Below are positions 3,476 to 54,008 of a stretch of DNA of 64,000 bases, piece by piece. The notes below the pieces were generated by a model. The model saw only the letters and a list, made by a program, of their open reading frames with translations. It was not told the DNA's origin and searched no databases. The stretch comes from Selaginella moellendorffii (Eukaryota; Plantae; Lycopodiophyta). The DNA lies in NCBI RefSeq assembly GCF_000143415.4, contig NW_003314263.1:2978041-3042040 (forward strand), read 5' to 3'. Each line of letters begins with the position of its first letter. Position 1 is the stretch's first letter. A program made the position numbers and the translations under genes.

Positions 3476-4150
3476 GGAGATGTCTTTCAATCCAGCTTCT
3501 CACTGCCGCCTGTAAGAGAGAATTTTCAGGATTGGAGAGTTCGATCACACGGTACAAACCAGCGATTGCTGCCAGGCGTCGAGAATGCGCTTCCGTGGTC
3601 GCCATAAAGATCTTATTAGGATTCTTCCAAGAATTCTCACGTGTGTTCGTCAATCCCGCGGCGTTGGAGGCCCCGATTCAGCACGCGACTGGCAAAGGCG
3701 AGAGAAGTCCTTTCCGAGTTTTCGATTTTGATGGGTATGATTCTGATGGGGCAGAGGAGGCCGAGAGCGATGAATTCTACGAGCTAACTCCGGAAGATTA
3801 TGCCCGATTGGTGTCCAAGAAAAGAGAAGGTCGGCAGGTTCGATCGTGTTGGTTTCTTCCATATGATCTTTCACTCAAAGTTTCCTTTTTTTGTTTTCCT
3901 TCCAGAGAGATTCTTGAAGACAGCAAAAATCCGTGACGCTGAGGCAGCAGCTCGTATTTCCAAGTTTGCTAAGGTAATGAAATTGTCACTCCATGGATCG
4001 TCCGACTTACATTCTTTTCTCCTCGCAGGCCACACTTCGTGTCCAGTTCCTGGATAGCATCATCGTTGAGGCCGATTTTAGTCCTCTAGATCTGGTTGTG
4101 GAGCTTGTTACAATGCTGGAAAAATTGCTACTAAAGCCAGAGATCTGTGT
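3476..4150 (+). pseudogene. PUX1: PUX1 (UBX-domain) copy, 5' end inverted and 3' truncated
   Basis: DEFYELTPEDY, FLKTAKIRDAEAAAR and ATLRVQF exons are present. The segment carrying the ATG (about 3476-3631) is in the opposite orientation. Confidence 0.85.
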
Positions 4151-4184
4151 AAGTTCTCCTTCCAAAACTCTTTTTTTTTTCTAG

Positions 4185-4690
4185 TTTGCAGATGGTCTTC
4201 TGGATCTCATTGTTCTCCGGGACTCAAGTTCATTGGCCTGCTTATGAGCATACAGTGGTGGAATGCAAGTATCTCATGTATGTCTCACTCGAAGCTTTGT
4301 TTGATCTTTGATGCATATATAAGTGCAAGTGTTCCCAGTGGAAGAGTGTTCCAAGGAGGATACATCGACGTTGATGGTGAGGTAATCGATCACGGAGGAA
4401 CTGTCAACGTGAGTTCGTTTTTGTTTTTTTTGTTTGTGCTAGCTGCAAATGCTACCAGCAACCAACATTATCGATATGTATGCCTGAATTATCAACAGGC
4501 ATGCATACGATCAGTGTACACAGATGTTTTTGGTTCTCCTGGTGCGAATTTGTTGTTTAACGTACTTCTGATGAGCAGCGACTGAAAATTTGCAGCATTC
4601 ATGTCCAGGTCCTGAGCTTGCGGTGGAATATACATGGCTGGCCAGTGCCAGTGAAGCCTAGGTCCTTCAGTCTCTGTCTCTTCTTGATAG
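4185..4690 (+). pseudogene. Chimeric sphingosine-kinase 3' exons fused to decayed DHAD exons
   Basis: FADGLLDLIVLRD and GYIDVDGEVI (SPHK C-terminus), followed by HGGTVN|gt and EQRLK..QHSCPG..CGGIY (DHAD exons 2-4). Confidence 0.75.
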
Positions 4691-28434: not shown

Positions 28435-29340
28435 GCCAATCCCTCGCAAGAATGCGGACGCCAGGGCATCGGTGAGCTCCTCCCCCACGGAGATCGCCGC
28501 TCCATCGCGGCAGCAGGGCACCGGCGAGCACGCGATCGTGTTGAATCACTACAGCAGCCGCGTGACGCAGCCCAAATCCCAGCTCTATGGCGTGGGGCTG
28601 CGCGACGAGAACATGGCCAAGGCGCAGGTCGGGATCTTCTCGGTGTGATACGAGGGCAACACTTGCAATATGCATTTGCTCAAGCTCTTCGAGGCTGTCA
28701 AGGAGGGAGCGGCATGGTGGGATTTCGATTCAACACCGTGGGCATCTCGATGGGGACCCCGAGGGGATGTGCTTTAGCTTGCAGTCGCGGGATTTTATAG
28801 CTGACCGTCATGGGTGGACAGTGGTACGATGCAAATGTCTCCATTCCAGGCTGCGAGGTGATCGACTATGCTCCCCTTTCTCTTTGTTGTTTCTTTTTGG
28901 TCTTCTCATTCTTCCTTTGTGCTTTAGATGCCAGGAACTCTCATTGCAATGGGAAGGCTGAATCGACCAAGCATTATGGAACTATCAAAGTAAGTTTTCT
29001 CTATCTTTTTGGTTTCTTTTGTTCGCACTTGCTGAAACTGTTGGTTCAGCCAGGAATCCTGAACGGGCATGCGTACAATATAGTGTCAGCTTTCCAGGTA
29101 TTTCTGGTTCGTTTTGTTTCTCATGGTGGTCACGTAAATGAAGCTTATGCTGTGTTTTCATTGTCTTCTCGGTTTGTTTTTCTTAACGTACAGACAGCTA
29201 CTGAGAATATGTTGGTGGTCACATTTCTGACCAGCAGCGACTGAACGTTTTGCAACATTCATGTCCAGGCGCTGGAGCTTATGGTGGAATGTACACGGCA
29301 AGTACCATTGAAGCCTTAGGCATGTAACGCTGTCCAGGTG
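28435..29340 (+). pseudogene. DHAD: Decayed DHAD 5' copy (exons 1-4)
   Basis: Aligns to 978-1 with many small deletions, a TGG>TGA change near 28647 and no ATG. Confidence 0.9.
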
Positions 29341-29479
29341 AGCAGACCATGCTTGGGCATTCTCTGAGATATTCTGTGTACCTCTTCCATATACCCGTTT
29401 TAGGCATAGGCTGGGCATCCGGTTGAAGAGCGATGTGGAGTCTGGATGTTTCAATGTTTGACATTTGGCAGTATGATAA

Positions 29480-30170
29480 ATTCTTTGTTGTTTCATTCCC
29501 CTTGCTGGCATTACTAGCTTTGTCCTTGTCAGCATCCAGCATTGTCTGCCTATTTGATTCTAGTTTTGCCTTTGTCGCCATTGTCACCTTTGGTTGTTAT
29601 GCCACTAATTCCAACTTCACCCATGCCTTCATTGTCTTAGTTTTTGGGAAGAGTTTTGAGCAACAACTTTTTGAATATCTTCTTGCATGACTTATTTATA
29701 TTGAGTTATTTGTGCAGTTAAAGGTGAAATTGAAAATGATGTTTTGTGCAGTTAAAGGTGAAATTGAAAATGATGTTTTGCACAGTTAAAGGTGAAATTG
29801 AAAATGATGTTAAGCGCAAGTGGAACATAAAGTTTAATATTACTAAATAAGTTGTTCAAGAAAATATTTAAGAAATTATCGTTTAAAGCTTTTTTTTAAG
29901 GATGATGATGATAATGTGGTTGAAATTGGTGGTGTGCAAAGCAGTGGATACTGAGGATGATGTGGTAGGTGAGGTTGAGGATGATATGGTGGGTGAGGCA
30001 AAGAATGTTGACAAGGGTGATAAGGTAGTAGTAGCAGCTGCAAAAGTATTTTGAAAATATCCTTCAAAGTTGAGAGGACATTGTTTGTAATGGGTTTTGA
30101 TCAAAATGTCATATTTTGCTTTATAGTGAATTCAAAGATTTTTAATAAATTATATTTTCATTGTTATAGT
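29480..30170. mobile_element. Older diverged member of the fold-back family, with a 34-bp x3 tandem repeat at 29711-29811
   Basis: 29850-30170 is inversely similar to 4960-5400. TGTGCAGTTAAAGGTGAAATTGAAAATGATGTTT at 29711, 29745 and 29779. Confidence 0.5.
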
Positions 30171-30599
30171 TGGGTCCTAGCACTAGAAAGAATCACACAG
30201 ATACTACACTATAGAAAGGCTACCTCACGTTTTTGGGTGACAAGAACTTTTCCAGTGAATGTCGAGTGAATGTCGCAGCTTTTTGAAGTCCTTTACCTGA
30301 AATAGCACAAAAGACTGGAACATTGAGAATGAAGCAGACCTTTAGATAGCCAACTTTGTTGGCGAGCAACACAATGGTGGGGAATCATCATTGGCAGGGG
30401 ATCAAAGTTGCCACTACCCAGCGCCTTTACAAGGACAATGGCATGTCAAGTGACTCTCGTATCTTTCAGCTTCAAAAACTCTGTCAAGTGCTTTCCAGGC
30501 ACTCTTGAGGAATGGAAAGTGTGATTCCAAGTCTTTAAATGGAATGGAAAATATGCATGTACAAAAGAAGTAAGTTCTATCGAGAAGAGACAAAGACCT

Positions 30600-31600
30600 G
30601 TATAAAGGACCCAAGGCTTCTCTGGCACTGGCCAGCTGTGTATATTCCGCCACAAGCTCACACGAATGCTGCAAATTTTCAGTCGCTGCTCGTCAGAAGT
30701 ACGTTAAACAACACATTCTCGACAGAAAAAAGAACAAAAAATATGCCTGGTTGGTGGTAGCATTTGCAGCTACAAACAAAAAAATGATAACGATAAGAAA
30801 GAACTCACGTTGACAGTTCCTCCGTGATCGATTACCTCACCATCAACGTCGATGTATCCTCCTTGGAACACTCTTCCACCGGGAACGCTTGCACCTATAT
30901 ATGCATCAAAGATCAAACAAAGCTTCGAATGAGACATACGTGAGATACTTGCATTCCACCGCTGTATGCTCGTAAGCAGGCCAATGAACTTGAGTCCCAG
31001 AGAACAATGAGATCCAGAAGACCATCTGCAAACTGCTATGGACGTAAGAGAATGCGAAATCTTAAGTGTGACCTTGGACTCGGGGTTACCCCAAGGAACG
31101 TTTTGCCCTCCATCACTCTCCAGTTGACGAGGATACCAGTTAGGCGTAAGCCATGCGTAATTGCCTCTGCAAAAGGAGTGGCTCTATCTTGAAGCTAAAA
31201 CACACCTCGACAAAAACGCGAAAAGCTCCATCATACTGCGTGATATTCACTGAGTTGGCCATCTCTCTCGCATGAAGCTGGTGAAACAGAGAAAGTTTTA
31301 TGTCACGAGAAAACACCTTCTTTTGTGATCTCAATGCGAGCTGCTGGGAGTTAGTCTTCATTGATGAAAACGATCGATCTCTCCGGCCTCCCTAAAGAAA
31401 AACAAAGAAAAGTCCAGGAAAAGGAAATCACACTCAGCAAGAAGATCTACTTACATGATCGGCATCTCACAGTCCTCTTGCGCTGATTGCCTCCACAGCA
31501 CCCCTTCTCTGTGAATCCATGAATGTCGGTGCTGATCCCATGGCCGTCATTTCAACACCCCCGAGGAGCTGAAAGACCGAGCAGGAGCTGTGCAGCTTAC
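30600..31600 (-). pseudogene. Sphingosine kinase::DHAD chimeric relic (also about 34540-35500 and 39620-40590)
   Basis: QNVPWG, ADGLLDLIVL and GYIDVDG, then DHAD-derived HGGTVN and QHSC. Confidence 0.75.
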
Positions 31601-31862
31601 GTAGTTTGCTCGGAAGGACAAACTATCAATGCTTCACTTAATAGATCGGCAATAAATCGAATTTTCTCACCAGGATTTAGGGTTTTGGACCCTGTAGGTT
31701 TATGATTAATTACGATAAATACGTCCAGGTAATTCTTTGTTCCTACTTTCTTTCAAAAGAAAAAGGTGGCGAAGAGTCCAATCTCTCTAGCACGTCCTTC
31801 GTACTTGGGTACTGTATGGCTGGCAACTGTATTGACTAAGAAATATACGGCAGCCATGACGT

Positions 31863-32084
31863 TGTCGTACTGCAAAGTGAGGCAAGACATGTAAGCACTG
31901 ACGGATCAGCCGGCGCTTCTTGCCAGGCAGGATATTGGGGGGATAAAGGGGGGCCAGAGGGTGGATCTTGGAGTGGACCGGAGCGATCGATTCGACTGTG
32001 GATCGACACAGAGGTGACAGGCTTGACCACTTCTAGCCGGGTGAGCCTCGCCTGGGCTTACGCCCGCTTTATTCCACCACTACA
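31863..32084. mobile_element. 222-bp copy of the solo-LTR-like insertion with ACGT TSD
   Basis: acgt|TGTCGT...ACTACA|acgt; reverse-complement paralog of 24043-24250 at the same site of the MYB promoter. Confidence 0.8.
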
Positions 32085-32299
32085 ACGTGGTCTTCTGGAA
32101 CGCGTCTAAAAGAGAAAATCTTATGAAAGCCGCGACGATCTATAACTCTAAAGCGATGAATCCAAAAGAAACCTTTTGACAAAAGGGAGAAGTCTAGCAA
32201 TCTACCTCACACTCCAGGCTTCTTCCACTGGAATGTATACAAATAAATAGACAATCACAATGTCTATAGAACTCTCTCTTTACTTCTCCTTGCTTTGCA

Positions 32300-32740
32300 A
32301 TGGGGAGGCCTCCTCGCCGGAGCAAAGAGGGACTCACTCGCTTACATTCGGAAACACGGTCACGAGAATCGCTACCGGAGAAACCGGGTGAATCGATTTC
32401 TCACATCTTGTTTCTCCTAGATCTTGCGAGCAGGACTCAATCGTTGCGGTGCAGGCTGCGATGGACAAACTATCTCCGGCCGGATATAAAACGAGGCGGG
32501 ATCACAGCCCAAGAAGAGCTTCTCAACATCTAGCTGCATTCAATCCTGTGAAACCGGTAACAGTTTGTAGAGTTTTACCTCTAAATTCTGCGTTCTCTAA
32601 GTTCTTGCGTGTTTCACTTTCAGGTTGTCCGTGATCGCATCGCACATTCCTGGACGAACTGACAACGAGATTAAAAACCACTGGAACACACACCTCAAGA
32701 AGCAATTGTTGCAAATGGGGATCCTGTGGTTCTGTTCTTC
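32300..32740 (+). pseudogene. Decayed, 3'-truncated R2R3-MYB copy (partial duplicate at 37549-37824)
   Basis: Same deletions as 23225-23836, plus TGG>TAG at about 32531. Confidence 0.9.
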
Positions 32741-35700
32741 ACGTTTTCATATTACATTTATAAAGGATTACTGTAAGATTTAAATCAGACAAGTTTCTAA
32801 TATGGGCAATAGTTTCAGAAGTTTACTAGAAGCATGATCTTTGAATGTACATTCGTCAACATATCAACCCAACTACAAATAAAATACTGAATGCCCGAGT
32901 TGTTCTGGTACGTCCAGAATCTCAATGAAGAGGCTGAGAGGTTGCAGCGAATGTTACAAGCTGGGAGATTTCTTTTCAAAGCTTTTGACATTTTTTTATT
33001 GGACACAGGTCCGTATACTGCAGAATGAAGTGGAGCAAAAGGAACGCAAACGGATGAATCAAGAACGAAAAAAAGTATCTGTGTAGCATAACTCTCACGG
33101 ACAGTGGCAGCAAAGTTCAGGCATGTTCTTGCGGAACGAGATCAGCAGCTGTAGAATCTGTAGCTGAACTCGCTTCAGAGCCCGTAACAGTGCCACTTTG
33201 ATTTATAGCATCATGGAGGCACCAAAGATGGTGTGAACATAAAAACATGTGAAAGATTCTGAGTTGGAATGCTGCTCCAGGTCTTACTCTCATAATCCAG
33301 AAAATAAAGCTTTTCCTCCGGAATCATGAAGGTGCCTTCGTAAAAACAGATTGGAGGGATAGGATATTGTTCCTCATTTAGCTTGCTTTAGCTTGCAGTC
33401 GCGGGATTTTATAGCTGATAGCATCGAGACCGTCATGGGTGGACAGTGGTACGATGCAAATGTCTCCATTCCAGGCTGCGAGGTGATCGACTATGCTCCC
33501 CTTTCTCTTTGTTGTTTCTTTTTGGTCTTCTCATTCTTCCTTTGTGCTTTAGATGCCAGGAACTCTCATTGCAATGGGAAGGCTGAATCAACCAAGCATT
33601 ATGGAACTATCAAAGTAAGTTTTCTCTTTCTTTTTGGTTTCTTTTGTTCGCACTTGCTGAAACTGTTGATTCAGCCAGGAGTCCTGAACGGGCATGCGTA
33701 CGATATAGTGTCAGCTTTCCAGGTATTTCTGGTTCGTTTTGTTTCTCATGGTGGTCACGTATATTGAGTTATTTGTGCAGTTAAAGGTGAAATTGAAAAT
33801 GATGTTAAGTGCAAGTGGTCTAATGTAAATAAGTAATATTTAAGAAATTATTGTTTAAAGCTTTTTTTATGATGATAATGTGGTTGAAATTGGTGGTGTG
33901 CAAAGTAGTGCATACTGAGGATGATGTGGTGGGTGAGGCAAAGAATGTTGGCAAGGGTGATAAGGTAGTAGTAGCAGCTGCAAAAGTATTTTGAAAATAT
34001 CCTTCAGAGTTGAGAGGACATTGTTTGTAATGGGTTTTGATCAAAATGTTATATTTTGTCTTATAGTGAAATTCAAAGATTTTTAATAAATCATATTTTC
34101 ATTGTTATAGTTGGGTCCTAGCACTAGAAAGAATCACAAAGATGCTACACTATACAAAAGCTACCTCACGTTTTTGGGTGACAAGAACTTTTCCAGTGAA
34201 TGTCGAGCGAATGTCACAGCTTTTTGAAATCCTTTACCTGAAATAGCACAAAAGACTGGGACATTGAGAATGAAGCAGACCTTTAGATAGCCAACTTTGT
34301 TGGCGAGCAACACAATGGTGGGGAATCATCATTGGCAGGGGATCAAAGTTGCCACTACCCAGCGCCTTTACAAGGACAATGGCATGTCAAGTGACTCTCG
34401 TATCTTTCAGCTTCAAAAACTCTGTCAAAGTGCTTTCCAGGCACTCTTGAGGAATGGAAAGTGTGATTCCAGGTCTTTAGATGGAATGAAAATACGCATG
34501 TACAAAAGAAGGTAAGTTCTATCGAGAAGAGACAAAGACCTGTATAAAGGACCCAAGGCTTCTCTGGCACTGGCCAGCTGTGTATATTCGGCCACAAGCT
34601 CAGGACCTGGACACGAATGCTGCAAACTTTCAGTCGCTGCTCGTCAAAAGTACGTTAAACAACAAATTCTCGAAAGAAAAAAGAACCAAAAATATGCCTG
34701 GTTGCTGTAGCATTTGCAGCTACAAACAAAAAAATTGAAAACGATAAGAAAGAACTCACGTTGACAGTTCCTCCGTGATCGATTACGTCACCATCAACGT
34801 CGATGTATCCTGCTTGGAACACTCTTCCACTGGGAACACTTGCACCTATAAATGCATCAAAGATCAAACAAAGCTTCGAGTGAGAGATACGTGAGATACT
34901 TGCATTCCACCACTGTATGCTCGTAAGCAGGCCAATGAACTTGAGTCCCAGAGAACAATGAGATCCAGAAGACCATCTGCAAACTGCTATGGACGTAAGA
35001 GAATGCGAAATCTTAAGTGTGACCTTGGACTTGGGGTTACCCCAAGGAACGTTTTGCAGCAAAACCATCACGGATGCTCCCTCCATCACTCTCCAGTTGA
35101 CGAGGATACCAGTTAGGCGTAAGCCATGTGTAATTTCCTCTGCAAAAGGAGTGGAGCTCCATCATACTGCGTGGTATTCACTGAGTTGGCCATCTCTCTC
35201 GCATGAAGCTGGTGAAACAGAGAAAGTTTTATGTCACGAGAAAACACCTTCGTTTGTGACCTCAATGCGAGCTGCTGGGAGTTAGTCTTCATTGATGAAA
35301 ACGATCGATCTCTCCGGCCTCCCTAAAGAAAAACACAGAAAAGTCCAGGAAAAGGAAATCACACTCAGCAAGAAGATCTACTTACATGATCGGCATCTCA
35401 CAGTCCTCTTGCGCTGATTGCCTCCACAGCACCCCTTCTCTGTGAATCCATGAATGTCGGTGCTGATCCCATGGCCGTCATTTCAACACCCCCGAGGAGC
35501 TGAAAGACCGAGCAGGAGCTGCGCAACTTACGTAGTTTGCTCGGAAGGGCAAACTATAAATGCTTCACTTAACAGATCGGCAATAAATCGAAGTGATCTA
35601 TTATAAGGCGAGCAAACTTTGTGGCCTGCACATCGCGAACGAATTCAGTAACCAGAAAAATAAAGTTTCCACTACCTCGAGATTGCGATGTCTTTGTCGA

Positions 35701-38700
35701 TCCTCATTACAAGGACCATGGCATTCTGAAGCGACTCTTTCGTGCTCATAAGCTCCATCAAGGGCTTTCCAAGCAGCCGGTACTCATGTAACTTTAGAGG
35801 GTCTTCAGATGGAATGGAAGAACTACACTTAACAAAAGAAGGAAATCAGTTTCTATCCAAAATAGACAGAGACCTATAAGGAAGGGACGTGCAAGGCTTC
35901 ACTCGTGTACATTCCGCCACAAGCTTAGCACCTGGACATGAATGCTCCGCCGCTCGTAAGAGGTACATTATAAAAAAATCGCAGCGTGTTACGCGAATAA
36001 ACAGAACCAGAAATACCTGGAAAGCTGAACACTGATCGTATGTATCCCCACAACAGCATTTTCAGCTAGTACGAAAAATAAATGAAAGCGAAAAAAAAAA
36101 AACTCACGTTGAATCTTATAGAGAGATGCCTGGAATTGAGACATTTGCATCGTAACACTGCTCCCAGCTATCAAATCCTCGTCACAACCCCGCCACTGAC
36201 ATCGATGTATCCTACTTGGAACAGTCTTCCACCGGGAGCGCTTTCACCTATGCATGAAAAGTTTTACGCTCTTCCTGTAAGCTTTTTGAGCGACTTACTT
36301 TGACATACGTGAGATACTTCCCTTGCTGTATGCTTGTAAGCAGGGCGATGAGCTTGCAGTCCTGGATAGAAATTCGTCTGCAAACCGCTATGAAAAGACA
36401 ACGAGATCTTAGAGTGTGTACCTTGGACTCGGAGAAGCCTTCACTAGCCCAAGGAACTTTAAACATCACGAATGCTCCCTCCATCACTCTCCAGTCGCTT
36501 CTCAGCGACGAGGATACCGGTCCCGAGTAGCTGGTCGCAGCGCGTTTCCTTCTCTCGCTGTCACACTCGACTTTCATGCCATCGAGCTTGCCGTAGTAAG
36601 GTGCTCCAGGCGCTGGACCGTAGGTGAAAACACCGTTGTACCGCCAGAAGCGTAAGATACGTATCAAGCTCTGCAACAAGAGTGGAGTTCACATGTTATT
36701 TTAGCTCTTTCTTGAAGACCACTTATGTAAAATCGAAATACATCGATACCTTTCGGATTTAATGTCGACATCTGCGACAAATCCTGAAACGCAGCTAGCA
36801 GTCTTTTAGAATGTAAACATTCTATGTACCCCATGTCAGTAGAAAAACGCTGTTTTTTGGTCCTTCTACAACCGTGGCGACATCAACCGCTGGTTTGTGA
36901 CTTAACGCAAATAACTCCCTGAACGATATTCACGGATTTTGGCCATGTCTCTCGCAAGCTGGATTTGAGTCACTGAAATAAAATAAACTACAGACGAGAA
37001 GAAAACAAAACAAGTGAAAGTGAAACCTTTTTTTCGTGACCTCAATGCGATGTCCTGGGAGTAGTGGCAAAACACCCTGAAAAAAAAATTCCAGGAAAAT
37101 ACAGCTTGTTCTAGGAAAAGATCTACGACTCCATTCTATAAAAAGTTTCGCCCTAATCTAAAGTATCTCTGGTATATATTCTTCGCATCTCTTCATTAAC
37201 TTCATGCATGGGTTTTTCAGCTTCATTGCTGAGAAATCGATACCATGCGAGCCTCGCGGATGAAACTCACATAAATCCAGTGGCATTGAAGCTGATGGCA
37301 ACACTCCACAATCCAGCCACTGTAAAAACATATAAAAGGATTAATCTTCCTGTCGACTATCTTATTGGCAACTTCTAGCTTTCAAGAAAACCTATACCGA
37401 GGAACCGAAATGTTTATCTATAGCATAAAATCCTCTTTTGCCGTGCGTCCGTACGATTTTTTTGGCAAGCTCACATCTGAGCCGTACAATTCGTGGCGAC
37501 GGTGCAGATGTAAGCAATTGTGAACCGTTTGCTGAAAGTATAGTTTGCACAAACTATCTCCGGCCGGATATAAAACGAGGCGGGATCACAGCCCAAGAAG
37601 AGCTTCTCAACATCTAGCTGCATTCAATCCTGTGAAACCGGTAACAGTTTGTAGAGTTTTACCTCTAAATTCTGCGTTCTCTAAGTTCTTGCGTGTTTCA
37701 CTTTCAGGTTGTCCGTGATCGCATCGCACATTCCTGGACGAACTGACAACGAGATTAAAAACCACTGGAACACACACCTCAAGAAGCAATTGTTGCAAAT
37801 GGGGATCCTGTGGTTCTGTTCTTCACGTTTTCATATTACATTTATAAAGGATTACTGTAAGATTTAAATCAGACAAGTTTCTAATATGGGCAATAGTTTC
37901 AGAAGTTTACTAGAAGCATGATCTTTGAATGTACATTCGTCAACATATCAACCCAACTACAAATAAAATACTGAATGCCCGAGTTGTTCTGGTACGTCCA
38001 GAATCTCAATGAAGAGGCTGAGAGGTTGCAGCGAATGTTACAAGCTGGGAGATTTCTTTTCAAAGCTTTTGACATTTTTTTATTGGACACAGGTCCGTAT
38101 ACTGCAGAATGAAGTGGAGCAAAAGGAACGCAAACGGATGAATCAAGAACGAAAAAAAGTATCTGTGTAGCATAACTCTCACGGACAGTGGCAGCAAAGT
38201 TCAGGCATGTTCTTGCGGAACGAGATCAGCAGCTGTAGAATCTGTAGCTGAACTCGCTTCAGAGCCCGTAACAGTGCCACTTTGATTTATAGCATCATGG
38301 AGGCACCAAAGATGGTGTGAACATAAAAACATGTGAAAGATTCTGAGTTGGAATGCTGCTCCAGGTCTTACTCTCATAATCCAGAAAATAAAGCTTTTCC
38401 TCCGGAATCATGAAGGTGCCTTCGTAAAAACAGATTGGAGGGATAGGATATTGTTCCTCATTTAGCTTGCTTTAGCTTGCAGTCGCGGGATTTTATAGCT
38501 GATAGCATCGAGACCGTCATGGGTGGACAGTGGTACGATGCAAATGTCTCCATTCCAGGCTGCGAGGTGATCGACTATGCTCCCCTTTCTCTTTGTTGTT
38601 TCTTTTTGGTCTTCTCATTCTTCCTTTGTGCTTTAGATGCCAGGAACTCTCATTGCAATGGGAAGGCTGAATCAACCAAGCATTATGGAACTATCAAAGT

Positions 38701-41700
38701 AAGTTTTCTCTTTCTTTTTGGTTTCTTTTGTTCGCACTTGCTGAAACTGTTGATTCAGCCAGGAGTCCTGAACGGGCATGCGTACGATATAGTGTCAGCT
38801 TTCCAGGTATTTCTGGTTCGTTTTGTTTCTCATGGTGGTCACGTATATTGAGTTATTTGTGCAGTTAAAGGTGAAATTGAAAATGATGTTAAGTGCAAGT
38901 GGTCTAATGTAAATAAGTAATATTTAAGAAATTATTGTTTAAAGCTTTTTTTATGATGATAATGTGGTTGAAATTGGTGGTGTGCAAAGTAGTGCATACT
39001 GAGGATGATGTGGTGGGTGAGGCAAAGAATGTTGGCAAGGGTGATAAGGTAGTAGTAGCAGCTGCAAAAGTATTTTGAAAATATCCTTCAGAGTTGAGAG
39101 GACATTGTTTGTAATGGGTTTTGATCAAAATGTTATATTTTGTCTTATAGTGAAATTCAAAGATTTTTAATAAATCATATTTTCATTGTTATAGTTGGGT
39201 CCTAGCACTAGAAAGAATCACAAAGATGCTACACTATACAAAAGCTACCTCACGTTTTTGGGTGACAAGAACTTTTCCAGTGAATGTCGAGCGAATGTCA
39301 CAGCTTTTTGAAATCCTTTACCTGAAATAGCACAAAAGACTGGGACATTGAGAATGAAGCAGACCTTTAGATAGCCAACTTTGTTGGCGAGCAACACAAT
39401 GGTGGGGAATCATCATTGGCAGGGGATCAAAGTTGCCACTACCCAGCGCCTTTACAAGGACAATGGCATGTCAAGTGACTCTCGTATCTTTCAGCTTCAA
39501 AAACTCTGTCAAAGTGCTTTCCAGGCACTCTTGAGGAATGGAAAGTGTGATTCCAGGTCTTTAGATGGAATGAAAATACGCATGTACAAAAGAAGGTAAG
39601 TTCTATCGAGAAGAGACAAAGACCTGTATAAAGGACCCAAGGCTTCTCTGGCACTGGCCAGCTGTGTATATTCGGCCACAAGCTCAGGACCTGGACACGA
39701 ATGCTGCAAACTTTCAGTCGCTGCTCGTCAAAAGTACGTTAAACAACAAATTCTCGAAAGAAAAAAGAACCAAAAATATGCCTGGTTGCTGTAGCATTTG
39801 CAGCTACAAACAAAAAAATTGAAAACGATAAGAAAGAACTCACGTTGACAGTTCCTCCGTGATCGATTACGTCACCATCAACGTCGATGTATCCTGCTTG
39901 GAACACTCTTCCACTGGGAACACTTGCACCTATAAATGCATCAAAGATCAAACAAAGCTTCGAGTGAGAGATACGTGAGATACTTGCATTCCACCACTGT
40001 ATGCTCGTAAGCAGGCCAATGAACTTGAGTCCCAGAGAACAATGAGATCCAGAAGACCATCTGCAAACTGCTATGGACGTAAGAGAATGCGAAATCTTAA
40101 GTGTGACCTTGGACTTGGGGTTACCCCAAGGAACGTTTTGCAGCAAAACCATCACGGATGCTCCCTCCATCACTCTCCAGTTGACGAGGATACCAGTTAG
40201 GCGTAAGCCATGTGTAATTTCCTCTGCAAAAGGAGTGGAGCTCCATCATACTGCGTGGTATTCACTGAGTTGGCCATCTCTCTCGCATGAAGCTGGTGAA
40301 ACAGAGAAAGTTTTATGTCACGAGAAAACACCTTCGTTTGTGACCTCAATGCGAGCTGCTGGGAGTTAGTCTTCATTGATGAAAACGATCGATCTCTCCG
40401 GCCTCCCTAAAGAAAAACACAGAAAAGTCCAGGAAAAGGAAATCACACTCAGCAAGAAGATCTACTTACATGATCGGCATCTCACAGTCCTCTTGCGCTG
40501 ATTGCCTCCACAGCACCCCTTCTCTGTGAATCCATGAATGTCGGTGCTGATCCCATGGCCGTCATTTCAACACCCCCGAGGAGCTGAAAGACCGAGCAGG
40601 AGCTGCGCAACTTACGTAGTTTGCTCGGAAGGGCAAACTATAAATGCTTCACTTAACAGATCGGCAATAAATCGAAGTGATCTATTATAAGGCGAGCAAA
40701 CTTTGTGGCCTGCACATCGCGAACGAATTCAGTAACCAGAAAAATAAAGTTTCCACTACCTCGAGATTGCGATGTCTTTGTCGATCCTCATTACAAGGAC
40801 CATGGCATTCTGAAGCGACTCTTTCGTGCTCATAAGCTCCATCAAGGGCTTTCCAAGCAGCCGGTACTCATGTAACTTTAGAGGGTCTTCAGATGGAATG
40901 GAAGAACTACACTTAACAAAAGAAGGAAATCAGTTTCTATCCAAAATAGACAGAGACCTATAAGGAAGGGACGTGCAAGGCTTCACTCGTGTACATTCCG
41001 CCACAAGCTTAGCACCTGGACATGAATGCTCCGCCGCTCGTAAGAGGTACATTATAAAAAAATCGCAGCGTGTTACGCGAATAAACAGAACCAGAAATAC
41101 CTGGAAAGCTGAACACTGATCGTATGTATCCCCACAACAGCATTTTCAGCTAGTACGAAAAATAAATGAAAGCGAAAAAAAAAAAACTCACGTTGAATCT
41201 TATAGAGAGATGCCTGGAATTGAGACATTTGCATCGTAACACTGCTCCCAGCTATCAAATCCTCGTCACAACCCCGCCACTGACATCGATGTATCCTACT
41301 TGGAACAGTCTTCCACCGGGAGCGCTTTCACCTATGCATGAAAAGTTTTACGCTCTTCCTGTAAGCTTTTTGAGCGACTTACTTTGACATACGTGAGATA
41401 CTTCCCTTGCTGTATGCTTGTAAGCAGGGCGATGAGCTTGCAGTCCTGGATAGAAATTCGTCTGCAAACCGCTATGAAAAGACAACGAGATCTTAGAGTG
41501 TGTACCTTGGACTCGGAGAAGCCTTCACTAGCCCAAGGAACTTTAAACATCACGAATGCTCCCTCCATCACTCTCCAGTCGCTTCTCAGCGACGAGGATA
41601 CCGGTCCCGAGTAGCTGGTCGCAGCGCGTTTCCTTCTCTCGCTGTCACACTCGACTTTCATGCCATCGAGCTTGCCGTAGTAAGGTGCTCCAGGCGCTGG

Positions 41701-49170: not shown

Positions 49171-50895
<1,725 letters not shown>

Positions 50896-51351
50896 AAAGC
50901 TAGCTATGGAGTTCTTGAAGTTCTTCGTTTCAAGTGTTCTTACTAAAGTGGTTTGGTTCTACGCTCTTTTCTCACGAGTGGTTTCACAGTAGAAGTTTGC
51001 AATTCTATGATCTATTCTCTTGGAATTTGATAGAGCATCGTTTGACTTCCAAGAACATTAGACAATGGTGTACGGTATGTCGCGTTCTTACCGTTCGTAC
51101 AGGAGAATATAGCCGGGTTGAAATGTCGGTGCGTCGTGTGCCACGTGGCGGGCCGTAATTGGTCGGCGGCGGCTTTCGAGAGCGAGGCGCGACGCATCCA
51201 ATGCAAAAGGGCCCCCGCGTCAGTCAAAAGTAGAGGAGAATTTTAGGGTTCTTGCGCTTGGCAGCGCTGCGCTGAGGGTTTAGATTGGAGCGCGCGCGCG
51301 CCTGGGCCCGGGGATGATCTACTCTCTGGTGGCTCAGCTACTCGCGGCGGC

Positions 51352-51632
51352 ATGAATCGTCATCTGCTGTTCGTCACCAGCGTTGTCGGATTCTCGCTCG
51401 TGGGATTCTACGTCGCGGAGCTCGTGGAGCAGCGGTACAAGGTATGGATGGATTGGCGGGCGCTTCTTGCCTGCGAATGTAGGTAGATCCAGCATGGCTG
51501 ATTTCTTGTTTCTACGTTCTTGGCTTGCAGCGATCGAAATATCAAGAAGCGCTGGATCATCTTGCGGAGCTCAAGGCCCTGGAGAGCGCGTCTATGCTCG
51601 AGACTGCCAGTGAGCGCAAGAGGAGCGATTGA
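51352..51632 (+). CDS. Candidate spliced 63-aa micro-protein / uORF with an N-terminal hydrophobic helix
   Basis: Exon 51352-51441, intron AAG|GTATGG...TTGCAG (51442-51530), exon 51531-51632: MNRHLLFVTSVVGFSLVGFYVAELVEQRYKRSKYQEALDHLAELKALESASMLETASERKRSD. Confidence 0.6.
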
Positions 51633-51662
51633 TTGTCGCGGTAGCGTAGTGTCAAATGAAGG

Positions 51663-53131
51663 ATGCTGCTTCACTTTCGAGATCCATCAAAGCTCAAGAC
51701 AAAGAGAGTAGGTGTTCTTGATTTACTGCTCGTAAAGCTTGTTTGCTGTGTTTCTAGGTGGTGTTTGAGGCTACGTACTATGCCCGCGACTCTGGAACCT
51801 TGGAACAGCTCAAGGATCTCAGCACTAAAAGGAAAGCGATTGAAGAATCCATCAATGGAAGTAGCAATCTCACCGCCGCAATTGCGAGAGAGATGGCTGG
51901 CGGCGTTACATCTCCCATCTTGCAGGTATGTGCCTTTCGAGGATTCTTTGCTGAGAATCACTTTGTTTTTCTCTAGGACCTACAAAAGCTGGAGAAGTAT
52001 CTTCCTCTGCTTGAGAATCTAGTGGCAAACGTGCTACAGCAGCAGAATTTGCAGATCCTGCAGTGGACAAGTGACTTGAAACTTCGGTGGACGAGTGCTT
52101 TGTGTGGTCCTTCCGGCCATGGCTTGGGAGGGCCGAAGTACTGCCGGATTGACGATCTACGTTTCGAGCTAGCAATGATGCTCTCTCTTTATGCGGCGTT
52201 GTTAAGAGAAAGAGCCATGGAGTTGCTTGCGACCGGTAAGATTTCCTTGTTGATAGCCTGATTGATTTTGACTGTCGTTTTGCCAGACTTAGTCGAGTCC
52301 GCAATGCTTTTCCGTAGAGCGTCCGGTGTGTATCATCACTTGTCCCAGGATTTGCTTCCAGGATTGCAGCCGTTACTATCATTGGACAAATCTCCCGAGC
52401 TTACTTCGTCAATGACAACGGCGATGAGTCTTGTTTGTTTGGCTGAGGCGCAGGTACGAAGCAATTATTCTCACCTTCTTTGATGTAACCAGCTTTTCCA
52501 GGCCGTCACCGTTCGCAAAGCCGAGCAAAACATGACGAGCGGGAGCCTCGTCGCGAAACTCCACTATGGCGTCGTGATGTTTCTCGAGGAAGCCATCAAT
52601 CTATTGCAAGCTAGCTCCACTGACTGGATTGACGTCTCAGACAAGCTAAAGGTGCGTTTTTCTTTCCTTTTTCTAGTTTCACTGAGAAATGCTAACGGAG
52701 ATAGATTCATTCTAGAGGTTCGTGACTGCTTCCAGTGTTCTCCACGAGGCGAGATGCCGGCGACTCATCGCGGAAGAGTTTAAGAAGATCGAGCGGTTGG
52801 GCATGGCCGCGGGGATTCTCCGTCTGGTGTCGAGGAAAGCACACCTTGCCAAGCCTCCAGGTTTGGATTGGATCACTTTTGGATCAATCAATCTCATGAA
52901 AGCGAATTACTTTTCCTTGTTCCAGGGGATGGTACGTCCAAGCTGGTGTTCAAGGCAGAGATCACAGCACTGAACGAGATGCTGCGAAAATGCGAGCACG
53001 AAAACGATTTCATCTGGCGAGAGAAACTCCCACAGCCCGACGAGATTCCACTCATGGAAGGGAAGAAAATTGTGTCGGCGATTCCATACAAGGCATCGGG
53101 TCTGTGGCGAGAGCTTATCTTCGTGGTGTGA
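51663..53131 (+). CDS. BRO1-domain ESCRT regulator (BRAF/At5g14020-like), multi-exon
   Basis: MLLHFRDPSKLKTKR|VVFE..ARDSGTLEQLKDLS, DLQKLEKYLPLLENL, LRWTSAL, LRFELAM, CLAEAQ, AKLHYGV, HENDFIW..GKKIVSAIPY; GT-AG introns. Confidence 0.88.
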
Positions 53132-53277
53132 TGGAAGAAGGCTTTTTTTTTTTTCTCGAGGAGACAATTTTGGAATAAAACTAGAATATGCGGTCGGATC
53201 TTTATAAGCATATACTTAAGGATATCCGAAGGGATGTTCATTGTTGCCCTAAAGTGGCATCGTCGTGTTGGATCGTG

Positions 53278-54008
53278 ATGAAAGCTTTGGAGCGCTTGCG
53301 GAGTATCGCGTTGGGTCCTCGATCAGCTCCAGCACCCAAGAGTGAGTACGCGCTACTTCTCTGATCGATCTCGCTCCTATTTGCGCGATTTTTCTCGAAG
53401 ATTTCTCGTAATCTGGAGCGAGCGAGAGAGGAGAGAGATAGGGAGAGATAGAGGGCCCTTGCATTGATTTAGTACTTGTGCTTTGCTCCAGGCAAGTGGG
53501 CTGAGCCACGGCGAGAGGAAGTGGTGGTGCCAAGGCAATCGCTTCTCCTCAAATTGCGAGGCTTTGTGGGCGTCTTCCTCGTGATCAATGTCTGCATTGG
53601 TGGTACGTAAAAATCTCCCTGGTTCTTCTTCATTCTTGTTGACTCTTCTCGTGAATCGAGAGGCAGCAAAGATGAAGAACAAAAAAAGAGTTTGATGACT
53701 TACACTTGGTTTTTTTTTTGTTCTTCGTTGGCCCAGGCTATTTAATTGCGAAGACTACACCAAAATCGAGCAAGAAGCAGCGTGCGCAGAAAAAGGACGC
53801 CGCAGAGTCGCCGCCGGCGGCCCAAGCTCCTCCCGCGCGAGTTCCTCACAGGAAAGTCACGGCCAACGAGCAGCGCCAGCTTTTCCAGTGGATGCTCGAC
53901 GAGAAGAGGAAGATCAAGCCCGCGAATTCCATCGAAAAGGCCCGGATCGACGACGATAAAAAGGTCTTGAAGCAGTTTCTTCGATCTACGAATCTACCGC
54001 AGATATAG
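53278..54008 (+). CDS. Conserved plant single-pass membrane protein (At1g55160-like), 3 exons
   Basis: Spliced product MKALERL...FVGVFLVINVCIGGYLI...EQRQLFQWMLDEKRKIKP...KKVLKQFLR. Confidence 0.75.

Follow-up and report, generated by a model that had tools for sequence, protein, structure and literature searches.

A stretch of 64,000 nucleotides (nt) of the Selaginella moellendorffii genome (contig NW_003314263.1, positions 2,978,041 to 3,042,040 of the forward strand; hereafter the window, with all coordinates counted from its first letter) carries two closely spaced reading frames at 51218–53196, which together are probably an old land-plant locus that encodes two proteins on one message. 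The first, unannotated open reading frame (ORF 1) is interrupted by one intron and codes for a predicted membrane microprotein of 63 amino acids (aa); the second (ORF 2) belongs to a gene for a Bro1-domain protein and begins after a spacer of 30 nt. The reading we prefer, with a probability of roughly 0.6, is that of a bicistronic mRNA of the CDC26-TTM3 and green-algal type, in which the Bro1 frame would be reached by leaky scanning or by reinitiation. The features of the locus are the following (basis of each assignment in brackets):

51218..51313, plus strand: 5′ leader and core promoter zone (5′ ends of RNA contigs; telo-box-like and site-II motifs)
51314..51355, plus strand: mini-uORF (small upstream ORF) of 13 codons, its stop overlapping the microprotein start as ATGA (translation)
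51352..51441, plus strand: first exon of the microprotein, 30 aa, with a transmembrane helix that ends in GFYVAELVEQRYK (translation, hhalign, hidden Markov model [HMM])
51442..51530, plus strand: phase-0 GT..AG intron, 89 nt (removed in the contigs of four of four runs)
51531..51632, plus strand: microprotein exon 2, charged helical tail of 33 aa and stop (translation)
51633..51662, plus strand: inter-ORF spacer, 30 nt, with an out-of-frame ATG at 51656 (sequence)
51663..53131, plus strand: single-Bro1-domain gene assigned to the ROWY/BRAF family, seven coding exons, 379 aa (RNA contigs, exon-by-exon frame check)
51663-51707, 51758-51925, 51977-52235, 52287-52453, 52502-52651, 52716-52860 and 52926-53131, plus strand: exons of the Bro1 gene
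53132..53196, plus strand: 3′ untranslated region (UTR) (contig ends at 53153-53196)

The spliced frame and its RNA

Joining exons 1 and 2 gives 63 codons in phase 0, with the stop codon at 51630-51632. Exon 1 is translated into the 30 residues MNRHLLFVTSVVGFSLVGFYVAELVEQRYK (MNRH..QRYK). Residues 5-22 of the microprotein are hydrophobic (mean Kyte-Doolittle 2.12), and 13 of the 33 residues of its tail are charged. A sequence-only reading of the window had proposed this very arrangement: a spliced 63-aa frame with a canonical phase-0 intron, a hydrophobic N-terminal helix followed by a charged tail, a stop at 51632 with the Bro1 ATG at 51663, a 13-codon ORF overlapping the start of the frame as ATGA, an out-of-frame ATG at 51656, and promoter motifs (a telo-box at ~51243 and TGGGCC at 51303) upstream of both ORFs. 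All of these elements were found in place, the translation agreed, and RNA begins near the motifs. Read by eye, the telo-box-like motifs are TTAGGGTT at 51243-51250 and AGGGTTTA at 51275-51282, and the site-II motif TGGGCC occupies 51303-51308. Intron lengths at the microprotein/Bro1 locus range from 48 to 89 nt.

The stretch or part of it is contained in 20 sequencing runs, 19 of them under one organism label and 18 with a named study (8 studies). The listed runs contain about half of the sampled words, which is expected for spliced RNA. Assembled contigs of four runs (X1-X4, from four studies) were mapped onto 50900-53700, that is, beyond the stop codon of the upstream tubulin gene. The intron at 51442-51530 was spliced out at GT..AG in all four, and so were all six introns of the Bro1 gene, which means that the mapped contigs derive from RNA. 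In run X4, one contig of 1495 nt (record 8) extends from 51241 to 53153, covering both ORFs and the spacer between them; in X1, record 1 spans 51218-52235 and leads from ORF 1 through the spacer into the Bro1 gene. Contigs begin at 51218, 51241, 51269 or 51315 and end at 53153-53196, and there is little difference in depth between the 5′ pieces and the main contigs. In X1 and X4 the assembly graph has no branches from the leader into the Bro1 gene and a single depth. No RNA coverage was seen at 51088-51181 in any of the four runs. The transcription unit thus begins ahead of both ORFs, close to the telo-box and the site-II motif, and is distinct from the alpha-tubulin gene, whose end lies at 50895.

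Depth in the bin of the ORF 1 intron was in surplus in X2, which suggests partial retention of this intron in that run. The contigs of X1, X2 and X4 include the 13-codon mini-uORF. Its counterpart is not conserved at the Sphagnum or Papaver locus (see below), which is why it is probably incidental. At Bro1 intron 3 (52235-52289), one contig, seen in X1 alone, has GT..AC at the junction and the two additional letters AT; it likely reflects either a minor splice form or an error of assembly.

Relatives of the microprotein and of its neighbour

All similarity searches were run exon by exon. The microprotein family was reached via the neighbouring gene, whose exon 3 matched 62 representatives; the family was then searched with the Papaver exon first and with an alignment of 22 angiosperm sequences (A1) thereafter. 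At E ≤ 1, 324 proteins of 60-80 aa were found, and the best 120 of these 324 are angiosperm proteins or unnamed Logan/JGI entries. Among the matches listed, full-length members are mostly 61-80 aa long, and they are annotated as "uncharacterized protein LOC..." or "transmembrane protein". The 22 angiosperm sequences share 15 invariant positions. A Pfam search with these 22 members gave only sub-threshold noise (VTT_dom and LapA_dom, for instance) and assigned no family; nor did Pfam return anything useful for either exon of the microprotein or for three exons of the Bro1 gene in the window. No paper on the microprotein family was found in a literature search, and none with the motif LGFYVMH. 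In a profile search against the PDB, only the C-terminal part of mitochondrial ATP synthase subunit f was matched, and weakly (E about 0.1); this is to be taken as a lead only. In the ESM Atlas, a family query retrieved its own unnamed streptophyte clusters on top, followed by DUF4516 (0.89) and PIGBOS1 (0.83), both leads below the 0.9 mark; window exon 1 alone retrieved nothing. Ten angiosperm members of the 60-70-aa family (P0090, P0105, P0106, P0108, P0111, P0122, P0128, P0146, P0171 and P0177) bear the name "ATP-dependent helicase/nuclease subunit A". On microproteins with a single helix this name is wrong, and it looks like a propagated annotation error.

Exon 1 of ORF 1 was the top match of the angiosperm HMM among 7570 six-frame pieces of the window (13.5 bits, E = 0.025; runner-up 6.1 bits), and an exon-1 HMM that included Sphagnum and Papaver recovered it at E = 0.051. 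When exon 1 was aligned with the angiosperm family by hhalign, the match covered 22 columns and ended at the exon end (P = 4.3e-5, probability 69%). The whole 64 kb, translated in six frames, contains the tetrapeptide GFYV at one place only, inside ORF 1. In eight of eight loci (window, Sphagnum, Papaver, Populus, Magnolia, Spirodela, Coptis and Zea), GFYV and nine further residues are directly followed by the splice donor, which is GT in six and GC in Spirodela (L008 5117-5118) and Zea (L010 5111-5112). The block GFY(V/A)-x4-E-x2-(Y/H)-(K/Q), located at the end of the helix, is present in the window as GFYVAELVEQRYK. An alignment of exon 1 from the window, Sphagnum, Papaver and 11 angiosperms (A2) runs without gaps to the exon boundary, with G, F, Y and E invariant. 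Sequence similarity by itself is a modest case for kinship; the context, namely motif, intron position and gene order, is a strong one. Through these three features the 63-aa peptide is tied to relatives of the kind that the sequence-only reading had wanted searched for, and we hold with good confidence that the window ORF and the small-protein family are of common descent.

The 379-aa product of the downstream gene is 49.7% identical to the Sphagnum protein P0005 (E = 1e-113), the closest full-length one of the 62 representatives. PF03097 was detected in the related proteins P0005, P0035 and P0056; single Bro1 exons of the window gave no Pfam match on their own. Like ORF 2, Arabidopsis BRAF/ROWY1, ROWY2 and ROWY3 code for proteins of ~380 aa with a single Bro1 domain (PMC6141507, PMC11374797). 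Arabidopsis BRAF (ROWY1) is reported to require an acylation site at Cys3 (PMC6141507, PMC11374797), whereas the ORF 2 product, with the N-terminus MLLHFRD, is devoid of this BRAF-specific S-acylation site. Judged by its sequence, the product is a putative single-Bro1 member of the ROWY/BRAF family, assigned to the family and not to one particular ROWY paralog. Its earlier description as BRAF-like is therefore right at the family level only: membership in the ROWY/BRAF family stood, whereas identity with BRAF itself, given the missing Cys3, is not supported. Term searches of PMC6141507 and PMC11374797 revealed no upstream microprotein ORF, and a literature search found no paper tying Bro1, BRAF or ROWY to a uORF or bicistron.

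The pair recurs in two other plant lineages. In Sphagnum jensenii (L001), a called two-exon gene for a 65-aa protein lies 228 nt upstream of the Bro1 ortholog P0005 on the same strand. Its product has a hydrophobic helix ending in GFYVMHKAELQYQ, then the phase-0 intron, then a charged tail, and its exon 1 scores 44.6 bits with the angiosperm HMM. In Papaver armeniacum (L003), the microprotein gene is situated 101 nt upstream of the Bro1 gene, with order and strand unchanged. The linkage comparison covered Bro1 proteins other than those of Ginkgo (P0001) and Mesotaenium (P0023). No small ORF was found in the 3 kb upstream of the Dioscorea Bro1 gene (L002), none in the 440-nt leader of a Bro1 transcript from Logan (L012), and no Bro1 match ≤5 kb from the small gene of Populus, Magnolia, Spirodela, Coptis or Zea. 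The expectation of a small ORF upstream of Bro1 orthologs was thus borne out in Sphagnum and Papaver, but not in Dioscorea or in L012. Moss, lycophyte and eudicot share the order and strand of the two genes, with a gap of 30-228 nt, which points to a presumably old linkage that would have been lost from many angiosperm copies.

Several side observations concern these loci. Telo-box-like TAGGGTTT motifs are found just upstream of the Sphagnum microprotein ORF (L001 2204-2270), and one such motif lies within the Papaver microprotein intron (L003 2707-2716), to be compared with the leader in the window. An 85-aa spliced form of the Papaver microprotein with an upstream in-frame start (P0202, from Logan) occurs on 25 transcript contigs, the longest of which, with 2146 nt, is long enough to include the Bro1 ORF as well. 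Transcript L012 begins with an apparent leftover stretch of sequencing adapter (1-23).

In angiosperms, family genes also stand alone. A Populus transcript contig of 1037 nt (L006) bears the small ORF only, and in Logan contig L011 the microprotein is joined to a PP2C gene on the opposite strand, not to Bro1. In Populus (L004 223-1331, L005 194-1412) and in Spirodela (L008 441-1632), a eudicot and a monocot, a CASP-like gene precedes the free-standing microprotein gene by ~3.4-3.7 kb, which suggests a second, angiosperm-wide neighbourhood of the microprotein family. The free-standing genes argue against a purely cis-acting uORF peptide. The sequence-only reading had offered a conserved-peptide uORF as one of two options; this option was rejected on account of the free-standing genes in five angiosperms (no Bro1 within 5 kb) and of the Populus transcript with only this ORF. 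With the family standing alone in Populus and other angiosperms, ORF 1 is better read as a protein gene.

Proposed translation of the pair and competing explanations

In the proposed mechanism, one transcription unit would start near 51218-51241 and end near 53153-53196, and its spliced mRNA would carry two reading frames. ORF 1 would be the first reading frame met by scanning ribosomes, and the Bro1 ORF would then be accessed by leaky scanning past the ORF 1 AUG or, alternatively, by reinitiation after the short ORF 1. Since 75 nt separate the ORF 1 stop from the next exon junction downstream, the mRNA could be a target of nonsense-mediated decay (NMD), as has been reported for the bicistronic CDC26-TTM3 mRNA (PMC11291117). 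The AUGs on the way to ORF 2 have the following contexts:

AUG 51314: start of the mini-uORF; G at −3
AUG 51352: start of ORF 1; G at −3, A at +4
AUG 51594: in frame, inside ORF 1; T at −3
AUG 51656: out of frame, in the spacer, weak context; C at −3
AUG 51663: start of Bro1; A at −3

This pattern would fit leaky scanning, which has been demonstrated for green-algal bicistrons (PMC11291117). The predicted fold of the spacer was not unusual compared with shuffled sequences (z = −0.02), and an Rfam scan of 50900-53300 gave no match; nothing, therefore, suggests an internal ribosome entry site (IRES).

Several results weigh against the bicistronic reading. With regard to the peptide, the N-terminal motif W-(G/A)-Y-x-R-I-x-x-G-T-I-L-G-G, which is nearly invariant in the family and of which Sphagnum retains W, R and G-T-L-V-G-G, is absent from the window, where NRHLLFVTSVVGFS is found. 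Because this motif is missing, the window ORF is filed as a probable divergent positional ortholog and not as a typical family member. Profile comparison found no resemblance between the tail of the window peptide and that of the family (hhalign, exon 2, P = 0.43), for which reason constraint on this peptide may be relaxed, and a word search of the protein collection with exon 1 (44-aa stop-free reference) yielded no candidate. With regard to access to ORF 2, AUGs are not depleted in ORF 1 and spacer (three observed vs 3.55 expected), and reinitiation after 63 codons over a 30-nt spacer would be inefficient. The lost motif, the dissimilar tail and the fruitless word search would all suit a shared transcript in which ORF 1 is by now mainly a long regulatory uORF that lowers Bro1 translation and elicits NMD, its peptide having little or no function. 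The exon junction downstream of the ORF 1 stop speaks for the same explanation, as does the report that Arabidopsis uORFs of more than 50 codons trigger NMD (PMC11291117). Yet ORF 1 has retained its length, its two-exon frame, its helix and the GFYV-x4-E-x2-YK block, and elsewhere the family is a strongly conserved stand-alone protein gene, so that we regard a mainly regulatory role as unlikely, if worth keeping in mind.

The RNA data, too, have a side that does not favour a single message. The contigs are assemblies, and a contig over two genes neither proves a single transcript nor excludes an internal start site. The earlier claim of one transcript for both ORFs accordingly stands insofar as spliced contigs of four studies join them, and falls short of proof for a single molecule. 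In X2 and X3 the contigs are interrupted at the ORF 1 intron (51441/51529), and in X3 the ORF 1 junction is less deep (12.4) than the Bro1 contig (21.6); because of these breaks and the unequal depth in X3, there may be other RNA forms entering exon 2. Two packed but separately expressed genes would account for this: Bro1 transcripts would start within the small gene (intron or exon 2), RNAs of the small gene would end in or after Bro1, and the assembler would merge what overlaps. That the family is monocistronic in Populus (L006) accords with such an arrangement. However, a spacer of 30 nt is too small for a terminator plus a promoter, the graph in X1 and X4 leads unbranched and at one depth from the leader into Bro1, the tables shown contain no contig end or loose end between 51632 and 53153, and the pair has been retained at 101-228 nt in Papaver and Sphagnum. 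Separate expression is thus quite improbable. Chance offers a simpler explanation, according to which an open frame in a spliced 5′ UTR resembles the family by coincidence. The statistics are modest enough to allow for it (HMM E of 0.025-0.05 window-wide, hhalign probability of 69%), and an open frame of 63 codons is not rare at the local GC content. But the sole GFYV in 64 kb would then have fallen into the right leader and strand, within a hydrophobic helix and 13 codons before a phase-0 donor that is used, and the order of small gene and Bro1 would have had to arise again in two other plant lineages; coincidence is very hard to believe in here.

The bicistronic reading can be extended to function. 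In this extension, the pair would already have been a bicistron in ancestral land plants and, since its products act together, would have persisted for >400 million years in mosses, lycophytes and some eudicots; the membrane microprotein might, for instance, anchor or tune a ROWY/BRAF-type regulator of ESCRT (the endosomal sorting complexes) at endosomal or plasma membranes. A complex prediction with the Papaver Bro1 protein and the tail of the Papaver microprotein gave no support, a result that counts neither way. We consider joint action a long shot. If true, CDC26-TTM3 would be joined by a second plant operon-like unit of deep conservation, the first whose products are functionally linked.

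As to the surroundings of the locus, the last coding exon of the alpha-tubulin gene upstream lies at 50254-50895, and RNA depth in X1 persists to ~51000, probably in its 3′ UTR. The downstream neighbour (53188-53700) is expressed; its donor at 53341/53342 is spliced to alternative acceptors, with 53473 and 53492 as first exon bases (runs X2 and X4). Farther away, at 28803-40527, the window holds a unit of ~4-5 kb in three tandem copies that are 97-100% identical, with start-to-start distances of 3931-4625 and then 5084 nt.

Comparison with known bicistronic loci

Green algae provide well-documented cases of conserved bicistronic nuclear mRNAs; for land plants, CDC26-TTM3 is the only deeply conserved case in the literature surveyed. 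The Selaginella locus would, subject to proof at the single-molecule and translation level, join this known class of plant and algal bicistronic loci; new are the unstudied microprotein family and the deep gene linkage. In practical terms, a function credited to the Bro1 gene alone could be confounded by the hidden ORF, and a 5′ insertion or edit would affect both ORFs. That the small gene is repeatedly linked to a gene for a ROWY/BRAF-type ESCRT regulator, in moss, lycophyte and poppy alike, offers a directly testable hypothesis.

Plant conserved-peptide uORFs (CPuORFs) resemble ORF 1 in that they are located in the leader of a main ORF and code for a peptide recognisable across taxa. Unlike them, ORF 1 has 63 codons, which is longer than most uORFs, it is spliced, and in Populus and other angiosperms its relatives are annotated genes that stand alone and have mRNAs of their own. 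The polycistronic loci of green algae (PMC7896298, PMC11291117) are closer: they too combine a small ORF 1 with a short inter-ORF spacer without IRES-like structure and with AUG contexts that would allow leaky scanning, and their ORF 1 often codes for an organelle or membrane microprotein, comparable to the membrane microprotein here. In contrast to the algal loci, the host is a vascular land plant, a 13-codon uORF precedes ORF 1, an AUG is present inside ORF 1, and AUGs are not depleted. CDC26-TTM3 (PMC11291117) also has an ORF 1 of 60-65 residues upstream of a larger, unrelated ORF 2 on a spliced nuclear mRNA, where for the Selaginella pair the contigs suggest a single molecule. In both cases, gene order has been kept over a deep plant phylogeny, and the ORF 1 stop precedes exon junctions, making the mRNA a candidate NMD target. 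The two differ in that ORF 1 of the Selaginella locus codes for a membrane microprotein and ORF 2 for a Bro1-domain protein, and in that the microprotein and Bro1 genes are separated in most of the angiosperms sampled.

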